Shown here: piece by piece, positions 51,301 to 61,867 of the stretch | How the letters are laid out: every line of letters starts with the position of its first letter | Numbering within the stretch: position 1 is the first letter of the stretch | Assembly: GCA_965644265.1 (NCBI GenBank) | Contig: OZ286459.1 | Coordinates: 62,868,001-62,932,000 of the forward strand | Origin: Glycera tridactyla | Lineage: Eukaryota | Length of the DNA: 64,000 nt | Direction: 5' to 3' | Notes under the pieces: model-generated | Told to the model about the DNA's origin: nothing | Databases searched by the model: none | What the model saw: only the letters and a program-made list of their open reading frames with translations | Made by a program: the position numbers and the translations under genes

Positions 51301-54300
51301 TGGGAGTTGAACAGTTATGAGGTTCTCACAAAATATTCGTATTGGTCTCTGATTTTCGAAATATTCACTTCGACGATTCTTCCAGGAAGGTCATAGTATC
51401 TATGTCAGCGAATGCACTCTGCAAGCGACAGTCCCTGTGCCTGTTTCAATCAGTAGGGCAATCACAAGTGGAGGCACTCCCATCAGCCATACATGTGCCG
51501 CTATTCTGACATGAATCTGATTCCCAGGGCAAGACTTTAATCAATTATCCAACTGAATACCAAACAATCTGTCCCGAAGCCAAATTGGTATTTGCTGCCT
51601 GATCTCGCAAAATCGCCATCTGATAGAGAATTTATGATAGTTGAAAATTAAAGCCATAATTTCAGCATCTGAATGATATCATCAATGTGACATACAAGAT
51701 GGTAGCCAACAACCTGCTGTCTGAAACAAATCATAGATCAATATGAAATGCTACACATCAGTGCGTGTATCGGATGTGTTTATTAAGTCTTAGAAACCCA
51801 ATCAATTCTCAGCTTGTAGCATATAATGATGAAATTTTGAAATTTTGGCAATCATAGGGAGGGAAAATGTTTGTGAGGAATAATACACTCGAGTTTGGTG
51901 ACACAAGGGTGGTTCCAAACACCCCTCTGAGACCTTCACCTAACCGCGAAAGGCGGACTGATATAAACAATATGAATTGACCACGGGAAACTCTACCTGA
52001 ATTCTGTATTCATAACAGCATTCTTGAAGGTTCATGGATGTAATACTCGAACATGAGGTATTACCTATAATTCTGTGCATGGTAGGTCACCCATCATGGG
52101 TGCTCATCATGGGTGCTCATCGTCCTTGGCCAACCATGCCCACGTGTATCCATTTAGGTATTATGGTGTGATTTGGATATTATATATAATTCAGCATAAC
52201 TCTTCATGCATTTCGATTCTGAAAAGCACCAAATACACCTTTTCTGAATACACCTATGTGGATGCTGGAGGATACAATACAATGAAGGTGTATGTGATTT
52301 GGAAAAAGGTGGTTGAGTGAATGATAGCCAGGAGAAAAATGTGTAGAGGAATTCATGCTTGGTATTACCTTCACAGTTACTTCCATGTGTGTCATCTGGA
52401 CAGTCACAAATATAACTACTTCCATTATCCGTACATGCTCCACCATTCTGACATGGATCTGACGAACACGGTGTCTCTGAAACCAGGAACATACTCATAC
52501 ATAAGGTCAAACATAATCTTCAGAGGTTTGCATCTATGTACAGTTCATTTGATGGAGATGGCAAGCTGGAAAACTACATCAACATGAATTGAAAAAGTAG
52601 CAAGGCCAGAGGCACTTGAGCACATGAGTAGGTCAAAAAAACAGCTTGCGACACAAATAATACAAATGTGGAGTGAAACATTACTGATTGCCATTCATGG
52701 AAAAATCATGAGTATCATCAGAAGTGGTTAAGGAGCAAACATCGTTTTTCTCGAAAAAAGTTCAGCCAACTGCCAATTGAGAACACTTCGAAGGTTGAAA
52801 CCACAAGTGAGCATTTGATGTTTCACTTTTCTTCCAGTTACTAAGCTATCTGCAGTAGAACTGTGGATTATGCCTGTTACACAAACTACATAAGTCATTC
52901 GTGAATAATGACAATCTCATATTCATCGGAGTGGCAACAGCTTTCAGGTGTGTACTTGTCCAGGTAGTTGGAGATTCCTTGCCTGCATTCAGCAAATCAT
53001 AATCAACAGCGATGAAAATCAAGTCACCTTCACATGTTGTTCCTGTATATCCAGGTTGACAGTCACAGGCAAAGGCTCCGCCTGTTACAGATGAGCAGAT
53101 ACCATCATTCTCACATGGCTGGCTCATACATGGTGCATCTGAAACAGGGAATATCGATATTATTCTACTGATTCATCATCTGAGAATACATCTGGATGGA
53201 CGCTGGATAAGCGGTGAGACAGTTTCAATACAATGTATGTTCATCTGAAGGTGGTTGATTGGATGATAGCGTGGAAGATAAGGACATAATTGAGAGAAAA
53301 AAAGAATTTGTAGAGGATTTAATGGTTTGTATTACCTTCACAGTTACTTCCATGTGTGTCATCAGGACAGTCACAAGTGTAACTACTTCCATTATCCGTA
53401 CATGCTCCACCATTCTGACATGGATCTGATGAACACGGTGTCTCTGAAACCAGGAACATACTCATACATTAGCTCAAAAATACTGGATAGGAGTGTGTAT
53501 CTATGTACTGTCTATTCAATAGAGATGATAAGCTGGAAAACTTTATCAACATGAATTGCAAACGAAGGACAGTCACAAGTGTAACTACTTCCATTATCCG
53601 TACATGCTCCACCATTCTGACATGGATCTGACGAACAAGGTGTCTCTGAAACCAGGAACATACTCATACATTAGCCCAAATATACTGGATAGGAGTGTTA
53701 TCTACGTACTGTCTATTCAATAGAGATGATAAGCTGGAAAACTATATCAACATGAATTGCAAAAGAAGTAGCAAGGCCACGGGCACTTGAGCACGTGGCC
53801 AGGTCGAAATAAGAGCTTCCACTATGGTATAATGCGCAATTGGATGTTGAGCCAAATGAATACAGTTTCATGGATAGCAATATTTCGAGATCAAATCAGA
53901 GGTTTCATACACCAAATATATGTAACGAGTGAAATATCATCAGTTAACTATAGGAGGCTTATCTCCATGAAGTTGTAATTAGATGGTCAGAATAACACGA
54001 ATGTAGAGTGAAATCATGACTGATTGACATTTATGGGAAAACCATGAGTATCATCAGAAGTGGATATGGTGCAAAGATTGTTCCTCTCAGAAATAGTTCA
54101 GGCAACTGCCAATTGAGGAAACATCAAAGGTTGAAACCATGAGTGAGCATAGGATGTTTCACTTTTCTTCCAGTTACTGAGCTTTTTGCATTAGAACTGT
54201 GGATCATGCCCCCTCTAACACAAACTACATAAGTCATTCGTGAATAATGTCAATTCCATGTTCATCCGAGTGGCAACAGCCTTCAGGTGTGTACTTGTCC

Positions 54301-61867: not shown

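Follow-up and report, generated by a model that had tools for sequence, protein, structure and literature searches.

Glycera tridactyla has, in one gene for a predicted membrane protein, eight head-to-tail copies of a cassette that consists of two EGF exons. With good confidence we regard these copies as a genuine intragenic tandem array, which would have been built by unequal recombination and then shaped by selection on each copy together with occasional exchange among the copies. How do sixteen EGF domains stay almost the same in protein while the introns between them drift apart? The window analysed here is a stretch of 64,000 nucleotides from contig OZ286459.1 (assembly GCA_965644265.1), and every position given below is counted from its first letter.

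Structure of the Array

Exon mapping places the eight units on the minus strand at 52369-60987, each of them 1.0-1.3 kb long, and repeat finding gives eight copies of about 1 kb with a spacing of 967-1351 nt across 52331-61134. It is to be noted that Tandem Repeats Finder leaves the array undetected solely owing to its longest period of 500. In the direction of the gene, a unit reads exon B, long intron, exon A and short intron, and U8 is the first unit while U1 is the last. The EGF-B exons are 111 nt long (n = 8), the EGF-A exons are 108 nt long (n = 8), and the two types alternate strictly. The gene thus enters the array with B8 (60877-60987, 111 nt, phase 1-1) and A8 (60048-60155, 108 nt), passes through B7 (59728-59838) and A7 (59013-59120), the latter being identical to the amino-acid consensus of the array, and goes on to B6 (58693-58803) and A6 (57899-58006), B5 (57580-57690) and A5 (56871-56978), B4 (56554-56664) and A4 (55836-55943), B3 (55515-55625) and A3 (54687-54794), and B2 (54367-54477) and A2 (53336-53443), until it leaves the array with B1 (53028-53138) and A1 (52369-52476), the edge unit.

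All 16 exons have an AG acceptor and a GAAG/GT donor in phase 1-1, the contexts of acceptors and donors being nearly the same from unit to unit, and all 16 keep the six-Cys pattern. The exons start with DAPC or ETPC, and together they contribute 16 EGF domains, or 584 aa, in frame. Protein variants are only six: SYI in A1, CEC in A6, EAP in A8, QT in B6, GS in B8, and CG, which is common to B3 and B5. The short introns, from A to B, measure 197, 206, 208, 209, 209, 209 and 210 nt, and the long ones, from B to A, measure 551, 601, 607, 610, 686, 720, 721 and 923 nt; homologous introns can be aligned end to end among the units. The 923-nt intron, which belongs to unit 2, corresponds to a 721-nt intron with an internal tandem duplication of about 202 bp (53364-53767, minus strand), and this duplication accounts for its length. 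Its upstream copy (53566-53767) has a decoy acceptor together with a truncated, donorless exon A of 80 nt (53566-53645).

A unit of several exons that is repeated head to tail and preserves the reading frame is what makes an intragenic tandem exon-cassette array, and the genomic structure has all of these properties. An earlier sequence-only reading had described a two-exon EGF cassette in eight copies, and the repeat finding and the exon map bear this out to the base. Remapping reproduced its list of intron lengths exactly, the six protein variants that it named were found again with no others, and the intact splice sites and six Cys that it claimed are present in 16 of 16 exons. Splicing of the array exons into mRNA is indicated indirectly, by the conserved splice sites and by a dN/dS of 0.15.

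The Host Gene and its Other EGF Exons

The host gene lies on the minus strand and encodes at least 44 EGF modules, with one EGF per exon and all introns in phase 1. A scan for the six-cysteine pattern, C-x-C-x-C-x-CxC-x-C, found 29 EGF-like open stretches in the window, every one of them on the minus strand, and all 29 have an AG acceptor and a GAAG/GT donor in phase 1. Fifteen further EGF exons are located upstream, in the 40 kb past the end of the window, which brings the total to 44. Next to the array on the upstream side is exon A0 (61337-61444, minus strand), the nearest relative of array exon A with identities of 81% in nucleotides and 72% in amino acids (Cys1-Cys6 core), followed by exon B0 (61757-61867, minus strand), a diverged EGF exon of the B type. 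Another diverged B-type exon, B-1, lies downstream of the array (50688-50798, minus strand) and is 67% identical in nucleotides to array exon B. No relative of array exon B exceeds 68% nucleotide identity. These three exons are the diverged flanking relatives that the sequence-only reading had mentioned.

Downstream of the array there are 11 single-EGF exons on the minus strand (39254-50790), which are exons 34-44 of 44, with B-1 and the last exon's EGF among them. The last coding exon (39068-39363, minus strand) encodes the final EGF, 13 residues that separate it from a transmembrane helix (about 39143-39205), and a cytoplasmic tail of 25 aa, and the stop codon is at 39065-39067. Pfam matches of this exon are to EGF families only, and it has one distant paralogue, 15 Mb off on the same contig. 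By this predicted topology, the host gene would encode a membrane protein of type I. As for its other end, a signal-peptide-like ORF might be taken as a candidate 5′ end of the gene, which is a guess. A search of Rfam gave no match to an RNA family within 50000-64000.

The upstream part of the gene is also composed of cassettes, in which B-type and A-type EGF exons are joined by those of another kind, the C type. Exons 7-10 and 12-15 are copies of each other at offsets of 6.8-8.8 kb, and alignment of these upstream copies, at 74-93% identity, does not reach further than 100-200 nt beyond the exons. By this measure of alignability, the A/B array is the youngest among several cassette duplications in the host gene.

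Divergence of the Units and Purifying Selection

In mean pairwise difference among the units, exons A and B stand at 0.0265 and 0.0151, and the short and long introns at 0.10 and 0.138, respectively; many indels private to units come on top in the introns. Between whole units the introns differ by 7-18%; the greatest divergence is found in U1 at the edge of the array, whose introns are the most diverged. Along the aligned units, the diversity profile shows sharp valleys at the two exons and none elsewhere, so that a hidden third exon or a conserved intronic element is out of consideration. An open frame that continues from exon B for about 60 codons into the long intron was also rejected as coding, since its pN/pS is 1.66 and frameshifting indels interrupt it in U3, U5 and U6.

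At which sites do the exons differ from the introns? Variable sites amount to 6 of 168 nonsynonymous sites (3.6%), 9 of 45 synonymous sites (20%) and 227 of 655 intronic columns (34.7%). By Fisher tests, nonsynonymous sites differ from intronic ones with p = 2e-19 and from synonymous ones with p = 7e-4. Synonymous sites compared with introns give p = 0.05 overall, p = 0.65 for exon A alone and p = 0.027 for exon B alone, in which only 3 of 24 synonymous sites are variable, below the 35% of the introns. Within the array, the Nei-Gojobori method gives dN = 0.010, dS = 0.066 and omega = 0.15. Divided by exon type, exon A has a dS of 0.108 and exon B one of 0.032, and the Jukes-Cantor distances of the introns are 0.108 and 0.154. 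In a neutral simulation at the load of changes seen in the introns, and with indels ignored, an open frame and six Cys would survive in all of the 16 exons with a probability of about 7e-11.

Synonymous sites of exon A have thus diverged like introns, and therefore the identity of the exons reflects mainly selection, not homogenisation. By these substitution patterns, the near-identity of the protein copies would be mainly due to purifying selection on each copy. Homogenisation confined to exons is out, since the synonymous divergence of exon A equals that of introns. As exon B varies less at its silent sites than the introns do, some exon-proximal homogenisation or constraint on silent sites may add to selection at this exon. 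Purifying selection on all 16 exons had been proposed before, and the dN/dS, the p-value for nonsynonymous sites and the small chance of intactness all agree with it. It had also been held that introns carry many more changes than exons, and per unit the two are indeed unequal, at 10-14% and 1.5-2.7%, respectively. The wording "recently amplified, homogenised" stands only in part: the cassette has been amplified, and it is young by comparison with the gene's remaining EGF exons, but its silent sites have diverged by 7-15%, with dS of exon A at the level of introns, and the phrase is therefore overstated.

Compared with its nearest relatives, the array cassette has an omega of 0.6-0.7, against 0.15 inside the array. 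A table of the McDonald-Kreitman kind, array versus nearest relatives, gives p = 0.03, which is suggestive only because of small counts.

Exchange between Units

Sequences have also been exchanged among the units. In a GENECONV-style permutation test, runs of shared polymorphisms extend over 61 sites between U7 and U8 and over 53 sites between U3 and U5, while the 95th percentile of the null is 31 (global p = 0.0005). A maximum-likelihood tree of the segment just 3′ of exon B joins U3 with U5 (100/100), U4 with U7 (97/96) and U2 with U8 (86/88). This conflicts with the tree of exon A and the short intron, which joins U7 with U8 (99/95). In AU tests, for which the groups were chosen after inspection of the trees, the first segment rejects U7+U8 with p = 0.0024 and the third rejects U4+U7 with p = 0.0045.

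Three tracts on the minus strand stand out, outside of which the introns differ by 10-18%. The tract of U3 and U5 (55270-55625 with 57337-57690) covers exon B and about 245 nt of the long intron, with 98.3% identity over 356 columns, and the Glu-to-Gly change particular to B3 and B5 sits within it. That of U7 and U8 (58804-59117 with 59839-60152) covers exon A and the whole short intron, with 97.8% identity over 314 columns. That of U4 and U7 (56367-56664 with 59541-59838) covers exon B and about 187 nt of the long intron, with 97.7% identity over 298 columns. U7 is paired with U4 in one tract and with U8 in another, and therefore it is a mosaic of U4-like and U8-like parts. A simple history of block duplication was rejected, because the nearest pairs, 2-8, 3-5 and 4-7, are not collinear and shift along the unit. 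Exchange among units, be it by unequal crossing-over or by gene conversion, is thus real, patchy and occasional. The sequence-only reading had invoked unequal crossing-over, and on the point of exchange between units the permutation test, the conflict of trees and the AU tests side with it.

Origin of the Array

In the history that we propose, two EGF exons of phase 1-1, B followed by A, formed the ancestral pair, and unequal homologous recombination would have turned this pair, with its introns, into eight copies. Each step of amplification would have added 73 residues in frame, and the host gene would have grown repeatedly through such duplication of cassettes. After the amplification, neutral sites would have drifted apart between units by roughly 7-15%, purifying selection would have allowed each of the 16 EGF domains to depart from the consensus by 0-1 residues, and occasional gene conversion or unequal crossover would have left tracts of 300-360 nt with about 98% identity. 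In the protein, the array would extend the ectodomain by 16 non-calcium-binding EGFs. Their motifs suggest a stalk or a multivalent module, in which one surface is multiplied and each identical copy may be needed.

Could the likeness of the copies come mainly from frequent gene conversion or unequal crossing-over instead, that is, from classical concerted evolution as in VERL, EBR1 and the PIGSFEAST repeats of dumpy? The three tracts of about 98% and the significant mosaicism do mean that exchange occurs, synonymous variability of exon B is below that of introns (p = 0.027), and U1 at the edge is the most diverged unit, as expected if an array is homogenised from its middle. However, homogenisation would erase differences in introns and at silent sites alike, and here the introns are 10-18% apart, with 10.8% for the synonymous sites of exon A. 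The contrast is located at nonsynonymous sites (3.6% vs 20% vs 35%), which is a signature of selection. In a concertedly evolving array, silent sites are homogenised along with replacement sites, and repeats resemble each other more within a species than across species; silent sites of the present array retain a dS of 0.108 in A and 0.032 in B, and its exchange tracts are three local ones. We therefore find it distinctly improbable that concerted evolution is the main cause of the likeness. A dial of protein length is another, slightly less improbable but still unlikely possibility: by alternative splicing, the array would chiefly yield isoforms with a variable number of EGF pairs. All introns are in phase 1, which allows any subset of exons to be skipped in frame, and the near-identity of acceptor and donor contexts across units also fits such a use. 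The strong purifying selection on every copy neither requires nor excludes alternative splicing.

Is the array real at all? Tandem arrays are a classic site of assembly errors, and the copy number is known here from the assembly alone, so that haplotype merging or mis-joined repeat reads might have created the array or inflated its number of units. Every unit is, however, distinct, with 7-18% divergence of introns, intron lengths of its own and private indels, and this divergence is far above what we would expect for allelic copies, an expectation that is general and not a figure specific to this genome. Moreover, there is no run of N in the array, the unit DNA matches this locus only in the 2.04-Gb assembly, and an array of 8.6 kb should fit inside typical long reads. 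An artefact is thus the least probable of the explanations considered here, and amplification by unequal recombination, followed by selection on each copy and occasional exchange, is the reading that we prefer.

Domain Type and Glycosylation Motifs

The domains are of the hEGF type. Scores against Pfam EGF (PF00008, cut-off 21.5) are 32.3 bits for B8, 33.8 for A8, 36.1 for A0 and 38.8 for B-1. The hallmark of a calcium-binding EGF is an N-terminal D/N-x-D/N-E/Q-C motif together with a score above 27 bits for PF07645; exon B reaches 18.6 bits against this cut-off of 27, and exon A has no match. The nearest solved chains are EGFs of Notch1, DLL1, EDIL3, and factors VII and IX.

What distinguishes the array EGFs from the others of the same gene is the set of motifs for modification, for which the O-glycan consensus sequences were taken from PMC8950332 and that of Asx-hydroxylation from PMC8405936. 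The O-glucose consensus of POGLUT1, C1-x-S-x-P-C2, is present in 16 of 16 array EGFs and in 5 of the 28 other EGFs. The O-fucose consensus, C2-x4-S/T-C3, shows the reverse distribution, with 0 of 16 and 25 of 28. The EOGT consensus is found in 8 of 8 B exons, and the Asx-hydroxylation pattern, C3-x-D-x4-Y-x-C4, in 8 of 8 A exons. It is to be noted that the 16 copies derive from one pair, and therefore the pattern of motifs stands for only two events. Of the POGLUT family (Glyco_transf_90), the genome contains two loci. One might imagine that the cassette was remodelled, so that both EGFs lost the O-fucose site and gained or kept that for O-glucose, and was then amplified because identical copies were needed, so as to make a multivalent, glycan-coded recognition module for self and non-self, gamete or pathogen, whose copy number would vary between individuals or species. 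This scenario, for which the contrast in omega between the array and its nearest relatives might be cited, is highly speculative, and we give it very little chance.

Comparison with Known Repeats

Homology searches were run exon by exon. Exon A (35 aa), run with HMMER over 1.84 billion representatives, had 4742 matches, all to generic multi-EGF proteins with 40-56% identity per stretch; none of them has the CPDDTHG motif or a similar transmembrane segment and tail, and no orthologue was found in this search. A word search with the last exon, comprising EGF, transmembrane helix and tail, gave no match and no transcript-derived protein.

According to the exon-shuffling rule, after Patthy, modular extracellular proteins grow when phase 1-1 EGF exons are duplicated in tandem, and domain repeats are also known to expand by more than one domain per step. 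The present gene shares with this scheme one EGF per exon, introns in phase 1, a unit of two domains and older cassettes, and it has no essential difference from it, apart from introns that can still be aligned and make the history readable. In human LPA, the kringle IV-2 cassette of two exons is repeated in tandem inside the gene, and its units are near-identical including their introns and highly polymorphic in copy number. Both arrays have two exons and two introns per unit, arranged head to tail in frame, so that modules are added to the protein. Introns are near-identical in LPA, however, while those of the present array are 10-18% apart.

Repeats of VERL in abalone are ZP-N domains, and those of EBR1 in sea urchin are CUB, TSP-1 and hyalin-like domains. 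They resemble the present array in being tandem, near-identical repeats of extracellular proteins with diverged copies on the flanks, but the domain type differs, being EGF here, and the divergence of silent sites counts against strong ongoing homogenisation. A role in gamete recognition like that of VERL or EBR1 is, as an analogy, unsupported. Receptors with such a role are expressed on gametes, bind a ligand of sperm or egg and evolve rapidly and adaptively between species; the omega of 0.15 within the present array is purifying.

The PIGSFEAST repeats of Drosophila dumpy are reported to lie in one large exon, to be near-identical and to evolve in concert (PMC2930355, citing Carmon et al., 2007). 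Like the present gene, dumpy encodes a giant extracellular protein rich in EGF, with a tandem array inside it and signs of unequal exchange. The dumpy repeats are in a single exon, while here every module is a separate exon, silent sites are no longer alike and the protein identity comes mainly from selection. Concerted evolution has been described for domain repeats of metazoans with the recombination tests PHI and NSS (PMC5100051); recombination was tested here as well, by tests other than these two. EGFs of the Notch, Delta and Crumbs type resemble those of the present gene in that the nearest solved chains are of Notch1 and DLL1, and in that consensus motifs of POGLUT1, POFUT1 and EOGT (PMC8950332) occur among the EGFs of the gene. 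Nevertheless, the EGFs here are without the calcium-binding motif, and the host gene has no LNR, NOD or ankyrin region as in the Notch family: the last EGF is followed by 13 residues, the transmembrane helix, the tail of 25 aa and the stop codon. In Notch receptors, the EGF array gives way to LNR repeats, a heterodimerisation domain and an intracellular RAM/ankyrin part.

Significance

The array is a fresh and well-preserved case of an established way of gene growth, the duplication of cassettes, and it introduces no new principle. Its value comes from introns that can be aligned, so that amplification, selection per copy and patchy conversion, three processes that are as a rule hard to tell apart, can be separated at one locus. 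Near-identical protein repeats, then, need not imply a recent origin or homogenisation. If copy number varies, or if EGFs with only the O-glucose motif prove to be functional, the gene would become a tractable model for the reason why large numbers of identical EGF modules are retained by cells.

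Structural changes within the array and upstream of it

The array has eight tandem units (U1-U8), each made of an exon B, a long intron, an exon A and a short intron. The long-intron size classes of about 600 and about 720 nt come from the presence or absence of a segment of about 114 nt (window 58255-58483 and the homologous places): U2, U3, U6 and U8 have it, and U4, U5 and U7 lack it. In U6 the segment seems to have been duplicated locally, the spacing being 114 nt.

Within the long intron of U2, about 202 bp are duplicated in tandem (window 53364-53767, minus strand). The duplicated sequence takes in the last ~120 nt of the intron, the acceptor and the 80 nt of exon A that follow it. 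Since the copies differ at only four positions in the gap-free register, which begins about 70 nt before the acceptor and includes the exon part, this duplication is younger than the array. The 25 nt 5′ of the splice junction are the same in the decoy and the true acceptor contexts, and the decoy exon A is without a donor. If the decoy acceptor were used, an exon of 310 nt would result, with a frameshift and a stop 17 codons further on.

Can the long introns themselves encode protein? In most units the frame of exon B stays open for about 60 codons into the long intron, over its first ~190 nt (for example, window 59543-59727). We rejected a coding role for this frame, because its pN/pS is 1.66 and frameshifting indels interrupt it in U3, U5 and U6.

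Older cassette duplications are found upstream of the window, where the minus-strand gene continues with 15 further EGF exons (L004:1759-9469, L005:150-8898 and L006:334-2372, segments lying past the window end). There, exons 7-10 and 12-15 are copies of each other at offsets of 6.8-8.8 kb; exons 7 and 12 have the same protein sequence and 96% nucleotide identity, and only the exons with 100-200 nt of their flanks can now be aligned. An interspersed repeat lies at window 63153-64000, upstream of the diverged B-type exon B0; it occurs at least 60 times in the genome, on many contigs and at 70-82% identity.

Ends and relatives of the gene

On the sole basis of a crude hydrophobicity screen, a minus-strand ORF starting MVAVLSLLVCFNSVAPRG, at about position 2017 of the upstream segment L007 (extended coordinate 96017), may represent the gene's signal-peptide exon; phase-1 GT donors lie 55 and 73 nt downstream. 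At the other end, the only other locus in the genome that resembles the last exon in its entirety, EGF and TM region together, is G000:C1:78008867-78009139 (plus strand, about 15 Mb away), which is probably a distant paralogue of that exon, with 39% identity over residues 2-92. Elsewhere in the window, a minus-strand ORF at 28744-28971, which adjoins masked N runs, resembles the start of an animal alpha-amylase gene (signal peptide and first exon).

Glycosylation motifs

Consensus motifs for glycosylation were scanned in all 44 EGF exons found in the gene (window 39254-61867 and L004-L006). The O-glucose consensus is found in all 16 EGFs of the array and in only 5 of the 28 others, whereas that for O-fucose is found in none of the 16 and in 25 of the 28. 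At the level of predicted sites, there is thus a switch of glycosylation motif between the array EGFs and the rest of the gene.
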